Source of the DNA: Oculina patagonica
Taxonomy: Eukaryota
Assembly (NCBI RefSeq): GCF_052425735.1
Contig: NC_135762.1
Coordinates: forward strand, 26,164,001-26,228,000
Direction of reading: 5' to 3'
Length of the DNA: 64,000 nucleotides
Positions 13,703 to 16,700 of this stretch are shown piece after piece; position 1 is the stretch's first letter, and the number at the start of each line of letters is the position of its first letter. The position numbers and the translations under genes are program-made. The notes beneath the pieces were generated by a model that had not been told where the DNA came from, searched no databases, and saw nothing but the letters and a program-made list of their open reading frames with translations.

Positions 13703-16700
13703 CTATTTTTGCCATTCTTTCCATTCCATTCCATCTGGAGGTTTACAGTCAACATGCTTTTGTTTAACTTCATCCCAGTTAGTACTCAAGACTGTCCCGC
13801 CTGATTCAACAAACGATTTATTCATTGCTCTTCGCACTTCCTCGTTGCCATCACCATAAATCTGTTGAAATAATTGATTGAGAGCAGCTTCTCCTTCGAG
13901 TTTTTCATCCTTCTCGTCCTTTGCAATTTGTGCCGCAACTTTGTCCCAGTCTTTTCCAACATGTCGGGATGAAGGATATTTATGCACAGGGTCATCTGAA
14001 GCTTTTGGTTTTTCTAAAATAAAATAGTTAGCTTGGTGTTAATCTTTATGTAAACAAGTAGTACATAGTCTAAGACTACTGGTCCGCTTGTCTCCAGAGA
14101 CCAACCTTGTGTACCACAAGTGTTGGATCACTGAGGTGGGGAGAAATAAGAACTTTCCTCCCGTTACCACCATGCCTTACGCAGTGCTGACGAGTCCCAA
14201 AGAGGACGAAACAGCTGTCCACTGCTAGGCTGGTGTGTTACCTCAGTCTGGAGATGAGCAAAGTGCACATACCTAAGCGTAGTGAGCCCAGTTCACTAGT
14301 AAACATAATTAATTTCATTTTCATTTACACTTTTACATGTATTGTGTAGCATGGTACTGAGTGTACATGTATCTTGTCTTTGGGAGGTAAGATGATGTAC
14401 ATGTAACAACCCCACCACTGATCATGTGATGTGCTGCCACGACCCCTAAGATTTGAAATGGAGTTGACTTTGTTAAAGGAGCTACGTCACAGACAACAAT
14501 TTTGAAAAAATTGGCAACGTTTTTCAAATTTGTCGTTTCGAAATATTTATTAGTCGAAACCATTCTTGGTTATTTTCTCCTTTTTTCACTCCTTTGTTGT
14601 TTTTTCTATGTTACAAAACTATTATTTTGAAGTTTCCTTCAATTTGAAAGGAATCATTGCTCTTTTAATGATTTTTGCTAAGGTCTTACTTTAGAGAACT
14701 TTTCACCTTGACGGACGCACTAGGCAAACTTTTAATCATAATTAGATGGTAATTATACTCTGCAGTTGTTGATGCACTAACCTTTTGTCGGAAATGGTTT
14801 TACAGCAATGTCATCAGCGGCTTCCAGTGATGACCATCTTATTCCTTCAGCTTTTTTCATCTTCAGTTCAATCTGCAAGTCAGAGCATATCTCAAAATAT
14901 CAAATCTCCTTCATGTTAACCATAATTTTCTTTTTGTAATATTATGTTCCGATAATATCAACTTACATTTTTTTGACCCGCAATGACACTGAAATTATCA
15001 CTGCAGTTCTGCTTTTCCAGGATGAACCGCATTATAATAAATTGTAGAAATTATTTGGAGGGTTATAAAATACTGAAATAAACCCCTTTCTGTCTTGCTG
15101 GTATATTGGAGGATAATGTCATTGGCTGAAAGATTCTGTCCTCAAAATTTAACAGTTTCCCTCAAAGCTTTCCTTCTAGGTCATTTTTCGGGACCGTCTT
15201 TCAGCCTTGAGCATTATTCTCCATTACAATCATTTCATCGGGCATTGTGGCGTATTTTGCGGGCTAAAATGGAGAATTCAGCGGGCTAAAATAGAAACAA
15301 GAAAAAAACGAAGCCAGCCAATCAGAACTGAAAACCATTCAACTGTTCACGCCGTTTTCTTGCTGGCTGGCACAAGCTGGCATAATTTCAAGCTTCGTTT
15401 AATTTGAGTCGAGACGCTTCAAAACTGTTTTTGAGCTTTATAACGATAAAATGTTTGAAGGACTGAAAGGGAAAGCAAATTTTCAGTCTTCTCAGCTAGA
15501 TGAAGAGGAATTACAGAAACTCAAAGAAGAATCCAGGCGGCAAAGTGAATGTAAGTTTGTCTTCGTCAAGCGAAACTCGCTCAGTTGAATTTCAGGCATA
15601 TTCCAAACAGTAATGTACAGGTGTATTGCGGGTTTGATCACCCTTCATACAAGTATAAAGAAAGTTTGGTACATCAGTAACATCACATGACACTTTACTA
15701 GTTGTTTCGTTGTTTATACCTTGGTAGACATGACTCTTGTTTTACACTGTGCAGGAACTATAGAATGAGCAAGATCCAGTTCTAAGCTGAAGTCACTGCC
15801 ACTTGGAAGCTTCACTGTAGCACTCAACTGAAATTAAAATGCAACCAAAAAAGTTTGCATGTACTTAAATTAAAGGCGCGTACGTAAAAACGGCCCCTTG
15901 AATTTCTGGCTAAATCGAACATTATCAAAACAGCTCCAAATTTCGCATGCAGGTTTGTTTACGTGTGATAAACACTGTCCTGTGTTTCATTTTGCTGGTC
16001 TTTCCTTCGTTTTCGAAAAATAACACTTGCAAAAGACAAGGTTTTTGCTGGCAGCGTCTTTAGGACTATTCTTTTACAAACGATAAACAAACGAAACATT
16101 TTGTTCCTCAAAACAATGAAACCAGCTAAAGTTTTGGGATTACAGGCCTAAATTTAGGGTTAAGGGCTTAACCCTAACGAAAAAGCTAACCCCAAGGCTA
16201 AGGGTTGGGGTTAGCGTTTCAAGTTAAGTTTAGGATCAGAGTCAGCCTTAACACTTAGATCACGCTTTTCGTGCAGTAAGCTTTCACGCCAGTTTGCTTG
16301 CGGCTAGTTTTTACTGCAGTCTGCGTGCGGTTAGCTGCTTTTTGTTGTTTCGGGCAAGACTATTTTGGCATATACTAAAACCCGAAACAACGAAACGAAA
16401 CCACCGAAACGAAACGACCGAAACCACCGAAACGAGCAAAACGAAACCGCCGAAACAACCGAAACGGCCGAAACGAGCGAAACGAAACGAAATCACCGAA
16501 ACAAGCAAAACTTCAAGATTTTCGCCACTTACCGTACTATACACCCCGTTTAGCCTACTATACACTCTGATTAGCCTACTATAAACCCCGGTTAGCCTAC
16601 TATACACTCCTGTTAGCCTACTACACACTCCGGTTAGCCTACGTTTCACTTAGGTTAGCCTACTATGCACTCCGGTTAGCCTGTTTACGGTTAGCTCTCA

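Follow-up and report, generated by a model that had tools for sequence, protein, structure and literature searches.

A polymorphic retrozyme copy in the last intron of a SUGT1 homologue of Oculina patagonica and its likely origin by a Penelope-like element enzyme

The insertion and its empty site

A window of 64,000 nt from Oculina patagonica (NC_135762.1, positions 26,164,001–26,228,000 of the + strand, assembly GCF_052425735.1; window coordinates are used throughout) carries a 256-bp segment with a type I hammerhead ribozyme in the last intron of a SUGT1 (SGT1) homologue. This segment is likely to be a haplotype-specific insertion of a 5′-truncated, less-than-unit copy of a 379-nt retrozyme of the non-long terminal repeat (non-LTR) kind, the enzyme of a Penelope-like element (PLE) being the most probable agent of its copying. 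The features of the locus are collected in Table 1.

The filled and the empty site are both visible in the window. In self-BLAST, the left parts of two blocks, A and B, align at 98.3% identity (1774–7290 vs. 8534–14057) and their right parts at 86.8% (7289–8033 vs. 14311–15062), so that the identity falls from left to right of the insert. The alignment is interrupted at 7290 in block A and at 14057–14311 in block B, and the interruption is the insert. It replaces one A of the empty allele at the AT-rich point AAACAA^ATTCATT; the target flank GTAAACAA on its left is common to both alleles, and the empty site in block A reads GTAAACAAATTCATTTTC. A preliminary description of this DNA, made from the sequence alone, had already noted the lack of this segment in the other copy, but its length of about 242 bp is revised here.

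Table 1. Features of the insertion locus (window coordinates).
Feature	Position	Strand	Basis
Block A, empty haplotype	1774–8033		Self-BLAST; right end exactly at the assembly gap
Empty site GTAAACAAATTCATTTTC in block A	7283–7300	+	Exact string search; alignment
Assembly gap of 500 N between blocks A and B	8034–8533
Block B, filled haplotype	8534–15062		Self-BLAST; left end exactly at the gap
Last coding exon of the SUGT1 (SGT1) homologue, with SGS domain and stop codon	13703–14013	−	Open reading frame listing; Pfam PF05002, E 4.3e-36
Left target flank GTAAACAA, common to both alleles	14050–14057	+	Sequence; alignment; empty-allele contigs
Inserted segment, 256 bp replacing one A of the empty allele	14058–14313	+	Block alignment; contig joints
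8-nt filler GTAGTACA at the 5′ junction, not family sequence	14058–14065	+	In no other copy; alignment not above null
Retrozyme arm, unit 1–245 of 379 nt, ending within site I	14066–14310	+	BLAST vs. the L002 unit; 3′-end census
Type I hammerhead ribozyme, predicted cut after C14219	14181–14225	+	Rfam RF00163, 47.3 bits, E 4.2e-9
Palindromic helix III ACAGCUGU	14211–14218	+	ViennaRNA on 14166–14240
CS-domain exon of the SUGT1 homologue, once in the window	18217–18330	−	PF04969 match G000:C5:26182217-26182330

The public read evidence was taken from assembled Logan contigs of four runs. Contigs of runs X1, X3, and X9, which bear three different organism labels, pass from 14057 to 14314 with a single A between and thus represent the empty allele, their joints being identical to block A at 7283–7300. 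In run X9, a separate contig of 124 nt spans the filled right junction (14257–14379, with one mismatch) and includes the private A at 14275. Therefore, the insert is a segregating presence/absence variant, and the polymorphism with its empty site, as first described, is upheld. In X3 and X9, the flank around the empty site agrees with block B wherever A and B can be told apart between 13916 and 14027, a hint that the two haplotypes had already split when the insertion took place.

Blocks A and B are very probably alleles, that is, two haplotypes of a single locus placed in tandem across the gap. Haplotype contig ends scaffolded in this way are usually marked by both blocks abutting an N gap, and here A ends and B starts exactly at the 500-N gap. 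The doubling is also limited to the 3′ exon of the SUGT1 homologue, and among the pieces listed from three public runs there is one contig type each across 13701–14057, not two (these are the longest pieces only, and contigs may drop variants). The placement of both blocks on one scaffold and the identity of just 86.8% in their right part would agree with a true genomic tandem duplication, in which the insert would separate paralogues and not alleles; against the three observations above, we regard this as improbable. The right part of A and B contains high-copy repeats, with contig depths 100–1000 times the single-copy level at 14418–14720 and past 15024, and several further indel joints.

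The insert is a truncated copy of a 379-nt unit

The genome was searched with the insert, and from 132 first-look candidates at least 51 BLAST matches were obtained. One locus, L002, is a tandem array with a period of 379 nt repeated 2.4 times (98% matches) and with two full hammerheads. The existence of a retrozyme family with other genomic copies, as proposed in the preliminary description, was thus borne out, and its unit could be defined. The unit has a GC content of 44.3% (48% in the insert) and no open reading frame, so the family is non-autonomous. No terminal repeats were found around the family copies; the primer-binding site and the polypurine tract were not specifically searched for.

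When placed on this unit, the insert corresponds to positions 1–245, preceded by the 8-nt filler. Positions 246–379 (134 nt) are missing and there is no second ribozyme, so that the copy amounts to 0.65 unit and does not correspond to one circularly permuted monomer, as had been suggested. Since it holds a single ribozyme and only 65% of the unit, the window copy would be unable to release or circularize a unit-length RNA, and can be regarded, from its sequence, as dead on arrival. Compared with the family consensus, it has ten differences over 246 positions (4.1%), each of which is either absent from the other sampled copies or shared with one at most. The youngest copies differ by 0.8–1.5% and the oldest sampled by about 11%; the insertion can therefore be called recent, as it was initially, in a relative sense only.

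The heptamer GTAAACA, which occurs near both ends of the segment and had been considered as a target-site duplication or priming microhomology, was ruled out as a duplication, because its 3′ copy is element sequence: the consensus ATAAACATAATTA has ATAAACA at this place, the G having arisen by an A>G change at unit 233 that is private to the window copy. The real target-site duplication is 0–2 bp. The filler was also considered as a tiny inverted arm, the reverse complement of unit ~286–294. When the 40 nt upstream were aligned locally to both strands of the unit, a score of 16 was obtained, compared with a mean of 14.6 and a 95th percentile of 19 for shuffled sequences, and this candidate was rejected; the same test recovered a true arm of 15 nt at locus L075. 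Another local feature is found at 14101–14103 (unit 36 and 38), where the private changes T>C and C>A convert a bulged stem of the consensus, TCCAC/GTTGGA, into one with 5 bp and no bulge, CCAAC/GTTGG. Such a change might point to structural selection of the variant that served as source RNA, as opposed to decay of the copy.

Ends and composites of the family copies

For the census of copy ends, BLAST hits were chained in 64 family loci (L001–L030 and L057–L090), yielding about 50 distinct elements. Their 5′ ends are scattered across the whole unit, and their lengths range from about 0.1 to 2.4 units, with many copies crossing the 379/1 boundary. The 3′ ends fall into two clusters. Site I comprises 23 arms ending at unit 237–258, all but two of them within 242–251 (mode ...ATAATTATA), and includes the window copy, which ends at 245; site II comprises 21 arms ending at unit 304–313 (mode ...GCTTACTTTA). 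The two sites (unit ~247 and ~309) are separated by 63 nt; counted from the hammerhead cut at unit 153, they lie about 94 nt and 156 nt downstream, respectively. No start or end of any sampled copy was found at the cut itself.

Moreover, 13 head-to-head composites were found at 13 distinct loci, and every one of them pairs a site-I arm with a site-II arm (P = 1.2e-4 if the sites were combined at random). Exact flanking duplications of 6–10 bp, rich in A and T, accompany 9–10 of the 13 composites, as compared with 1.3% of mismatched flank pairs.

These ends resemble what has been described for PLEs. Their insertions are strongly truncated on the 5′ side and form partial tandems; a truncated copy in inverted orientation adjoins the 5′ end, and a ‘tail’ of 30–40 bp is present at one end only (PMC8557442). 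The purified enzyme of an Anolis PLE nicks and extends both DNA strands, initiates reverse transcription at two adjacent internal sites of the RNA, the tail being the stretch between them, and favors AT-rich ATT targets, while hammerhead cleavage is not required (PMC11167929). In that system the start lies 111–118 nt into a frame in which the hammerhead cut is at +26, which places it 85–92 nt downstream of the cut (PMC11167929). The participation of PLEs in animal retrozyme mobility had been proposed from their co-occurrence (PMC7229834) and from the homology of retrozymes to PLE pseudo-LTRs (doi 10.64898/2026.07.22.740005). Neither the word ‘tail’ nor inverted arms of retrozyme insertions appear in these last two papers.

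In the O. patagonica genome, open frames of the GIY-YIG type are abundant, with at least 150 matches, 860 candidates, and frames of up to 1371 aa, and many of them lie in inverted pairs. One retrozyme copy (L008) lies 2.6 kb from a GIY-YIG match, yet has no long frame beside it.

Because the sister copies bear the full insertion signature of PLEs, we infer that the enzyme of a PLE most probably made the window copy as well. Retrozyme RNA would have been copied by target-primed reverse transcription at the AT-rich target; synthesis would have begun at the fixed internal site I (unit ~247, ~94 nt past the hammerhead cut) and have been halted after about 245 nt, and the 8 nt at the 5′ end of the new copy would be junction filler. 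The preliminary description had assumed a circular RNA as template. Such a template is not required, nor demonstrable from the window copy, whose ends fit internal initiation as in PLEs.

Several observations weigh against this interpretation. The window copy has neither an inverted partner arm nor a clear target-site duplication, and for this reason its PLE signature is borrowed from the sister copies. The tail of 63 nt exceeds the 30–40 bp reported for PLEs, and no partner PLE with a terminal region homologous to the 379-nt unit was identified, PLE DNA not having been aligned to the unit. The ten private differences (4.1%) exceed the 1.7% by which the two haplotypes diverge left of the insert; this would mean either that divergence had accumulated in the source copy beforehand or that the insertion has a greater age than its appearance suggests. 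Finally, all of the read evidence consists of assembled contigs, which give neither depth, and hence no depth test, nor strand, nor RNA ends.

We lean slightly towards regarding the sister copies as direct evidence, in the form of a genomic footprint, that metazoan non-LTR retrozymes are copied by PLE enzymes. If this is true, reverse transcription would be primed by both nicked strands at two fixed internal positions of the RNA, 63 nt from each other, producing the head-to-head arms and the one-sided tail, and uncleaved multimeric RNA could serve as template in place of circular RNA.

One composite with nearly identical flanks was observed three times (G000:C13:27945597-27946009, C13:27993331-27993743, and C1524:18130-18542), which points to segmental duplication (with a spacing of ~48 kb) or to assembly redundancy. 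A second family of hammerhead repeats (50.8 bits, at least 26 sites, loci L032–L056), more abundant than the 379-nt one, was also noticed, for example at C4:60429995-60431208, C4:4735745-4736343, and C1:30141796-30142676. Its copies lie 554 nt apart in tandem and also form head-to-head inverted pairs; the tandem-plus-inverted architecture is thus not peculiar to the 379-nt family.

Alternative explanations

The view that the insert is a complete, circularly permuted monomer of a retrozyme of about 245 nt, copied slightly more than once around a circular RNA, deserves attention because the 5′ AGTAGTACATAG and the 3′ CTAGTAAACATAA share TAGTA..CATA. In this view, the ends would be terminally redundant, and GTAAACA would have arisen by target-site duplication or have served as microhomology for priming. 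The G that creates the 3′ TAGTA is private to the window copy, which would fit one variant template for both ends, and family copies longer than one unit imply that multimeric or circular templates are used. This explanation is nevertheless very unlikely. The single tandem array found has a unit of 379 nt, and sister copies and RNA contigs run on from unit 245 into 246–379 and from 379 into 1. The filler GTAGTACA stands upstream of unit 1 in no other copy and is not family sequence; the likeness of the two ends, to which the preliminary description had drawn attention, hinges on the private A>G at unit 233. Furthermore, the ends differ by a 2-nt indel, and we estimate that an 8-mer and the 18-nt 3′ end would share a 5-mer by chance in about 5% of cases; as for the 3′ GTAAACA, it is the ATAAACA of the family consensus. 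More improbable still is an ancestral segment lost from the other haplotype, for instance by slippage between the two GTAAACA repeats (14050–14056 and 14299–14305), although the excess of the 4.1% distance from consensus over the 1.7% flank divergence would favor it. A deletion between these repeats would leave GTAAACATAATTAATTTC, but the empty allele is GTAAACAAATTC. The right boundary falls in the 3′-end cluster of site I (23 sampled arms, the window copy among them) and the left one where other copies begin too, so that a near-exact excision of a mobile element would be needed, and in the three runs the empty allele is associated with no fewer than two flank backgrounds.

An insertion of the same truncated kind could also have been made by the reverse transcriptase of a long interspersed nuclear element (LINE), of the apurinic-endonuclease or the restriction-like type. 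Fixed 3′ ends, variable 5′ truncation, AT- or A-rich targets, and ‘twin priming’ inversions are generally known from LINE-1 as well, and the window copy alone displays nothing specific to PLEs. The family, by contrast, uses two fixed internal 3′ positions of a repeating unit, without a poly-A or LINE-like tail. All of its inverted composites have one arm of each end type, whereas the arms produced by twin priming start at random internal positions, and extension of both strands together with two internal start sites has been demonstrated for the PLE enzyme only (PMC11167929). We therefore consider a LINE-type enzyme unlikely, and copying by a PLE enzyme remains the preferred reading.

Hammerhead ribozyme and transcription of the family

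The complete hammerhead core of the preliminary description, including the position of the cut, was recovered by Infernal with Rfam. The RF00163 (Hammerhead_1) match covers model positions 1–45 of 45 and exceeds the gathering score of 34. The catalytic core (CUGACGA, GAAA, and GUC^C) is read from 14187–14219, with helix I open and the other two helices closed. Helix I is formed by GCAGUG/CACUGC, helix II by GUCC/GGAC with the loop CAAAGA, and helix III by ACAG/CUGU without a loop of its own; the cleavage triplet is GUC. An equal hammerhead of 47.3 bits was detected in about 25 sister copies and in both hammerheads of the L002 array, in which a search against Rfam at a permissive threshold found hammerheads only and no second ribozyme type or tRNA-like module.

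The minimum free energy (MFE) of the insert is −94.8 kcal/mol (z = −6.06 vs. 200 shuffles) and that of the 379-nt unit is −137.5 kcal/mol (z = −7.47). All of the pairings named previously, TCTCCAGA/TCTGGAGA, CTGAGGT/ACCTCAG, CTTGTG/CACAAG, and AGTGAG/TTCACT, as well as the extended stem I, appear in the MFE fold of the insert. The proposal that the palindromic stem III favors a dimer is likewise supported by ViennaRNA modeling of the 75-nt ribozyme region (14166–14240). Its MFE fold of −30.2 kcal/mol sequesters part of the core by a GCUG/CAGC pairing, and the active monomer fold, at −24.3 kcal/mol, lies 5.9 above it. The dimer reaches −64.5 kcal/mol, 4.1 below two monomers (2 × −30.2), with both cores free and an intermolecular helix III of 8 bp. 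The palindrome gives only 2 bp and an AGCU loop in the monomer, and the window ribozyme is predicted to need a dimer partner.

Across the copies, the substitution rate is 2.8% inside the hammerhead and 2.6% elsewhere in the unit. As the hammerhead decays as fast as the rest, it shows no sign of selection in the inserted copies. None of the ten private changes of the window copy falls in its hammerhead, which is unremarkable (estimated P ~0.13 for ten changes).

The 379-nt family is transcribed. In X15, a random-primed coral RNA library, a contig of 343 nt with a depth of 20 covers unit 280–379 followed by 1–243 across the 379/1 boundary, which the window copy lacks. Within the same 3-kb stretch, the flanking SUGT1 sequence has zero depth in this library, as have most of the DNA repeats of higher abundance. 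Additionally, among 22 listed runs with various organism labels, there are eight, recorded as RNA, that contain 30–35% of the words of the insert. This transcription is established at the level of the family, and the contigs show neither circles nor RNA ends.

Comparison with known retrozymes and PLEs

The family agrees with the metazoan non-LTR retrozymes (PMC7229834) in having a type I hammerhead in each unit, short tandem arrays, a tandem unit within the range of 150–450 bp at L002 (the window copy itself being solo, with 245 of 379 nt), a unit GC content below 50% (44%), a strongly self-paired RNA (z = −7.5), family RNA in coral RNA libraries, and coexistence with GIY-YIG (PLE-type) frames. 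The retrozyme families of the coral Acropora millepora measure 220–240 bp (PMC7229834), and the Oculina unit of 379 nt is set apart from them by length. In contrast to the efficient monomeric ribozymes reported for most invertebrates, its helix III is palindromic, as in the dimer-dependent ribozymes of amphibians. Short dispersed or tandem repeats with a type I hammerhead are also known from Schistosoma (Sm-alpha, described as similar to a short interspersed nuclear element) and from newts (satellite 2); helix III is weak in these ribozymes, and they perform better as dimers. These two belong to different phyla, and their likeness to the 379-nt family is one of description.

With PLEs (PMC8557442, PMC11167929) the family shares 5′ truncation, partial tandems, the adjacent inverted truncated copy, a tail at one end, two fixed internal 3′ ends, AT-rich targets, and a hammerhead ~90 nt upstream of the first start site. 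It differs from them in having no open reading frame and a tail of 63 nt instead of 30–40 nt, and its hammerhead is canonical with an extended helix I, unlike the minimal PLE variant. Dispersed solo retrozyme copies of vertebrates have been described as offspring incapable of further transposition, and retrozymes have been argued to be non-autonomous PLE derivatives on account of their homology to PLE pseudo-LTRs in Xenopus (Li, Clavereau & Pollet 2026, doi 10.64898/2026.07.22.740005). The window copy is, like those solo derivatives, dispersed and single, and intronic copies occur among them too, but with 65% of the unit it falls short of the vertebrate ‘monomers’, which have at least 80% of full length. 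It is probably an ordinary, inert copy of a known kind of element.

As a genomic feature, the insertion is a routine transposon polymorphism, yet it provides a clean pair of filled and empty sites with base-resolved junctions. The mobilization of animal retrozymes has so far been argued from their co-occurrence with, and similarity to, PLEs. The copy ends of the 379-nt family carry the biochemical footprint reported for a purified PLE enzyme, namely two internal starts, priming on both strands, a tail on one side, and AT-rich targets, and the hypothesis becomes testable, as the 379-nt RNA is defined and its start positions are predicted. They also advise caution in taking every solo hammerhead copy for the outcome of a circular RNA.

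The SUGT1 homologue and other features of the window

The host gene is a SUGT1/SGT1 homologue, as judged by its domains, because an SGS exon is accompanied by a CS exon upstream and a separate gene with Siah-Interact_N and CS lies on another chromosome, where the sole Siah-Interact_N match (CacyBP-type) was found. It is thus distinct from CacyBP, having CS followed by a C-terminal SGS. In a genome-wide profile search, the SGS domain was found only at 6948–7190 and 13712–13954 of the window; a sequence search of the PDB with the SGS exon gave no match.

As stated in the preliminary description, the last intron of the SUGT1 homologue harbors the hammerhead in antisense orientation, the SGS exon being on the minus strand. 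The acceptor AG is read at 14014–14015 and a branch-point-like motif, CTAAC, at 14028–14032, so that the insert starts 43–44 nt upstream of the 3′ splice site, beyond this motif. The insert is best read as an inert passenger of the intron. On the minus strand (the SUGT1 sense) of 14230–14300, the donor-like sequences AG|GTATGT and AG|GTAACA occur about 230–280 nt upstream of the 3′ splice site.

Elsewhere in the window, and away from N runs, there are further large internal duplications of 89–99.7% identity (27663–32427 vs. 37696–47725, and 39031–40125 vs. 43407–44501), which could be real segmental duplications or transposon copies. At 60353–61156, three tandem units of ~237 bp, 93–96% identical, each contain a tRNA-like module, with Rfam tRNA matches at 60781–60851 (30.4 bits) and 61018–61089 (40 bits).

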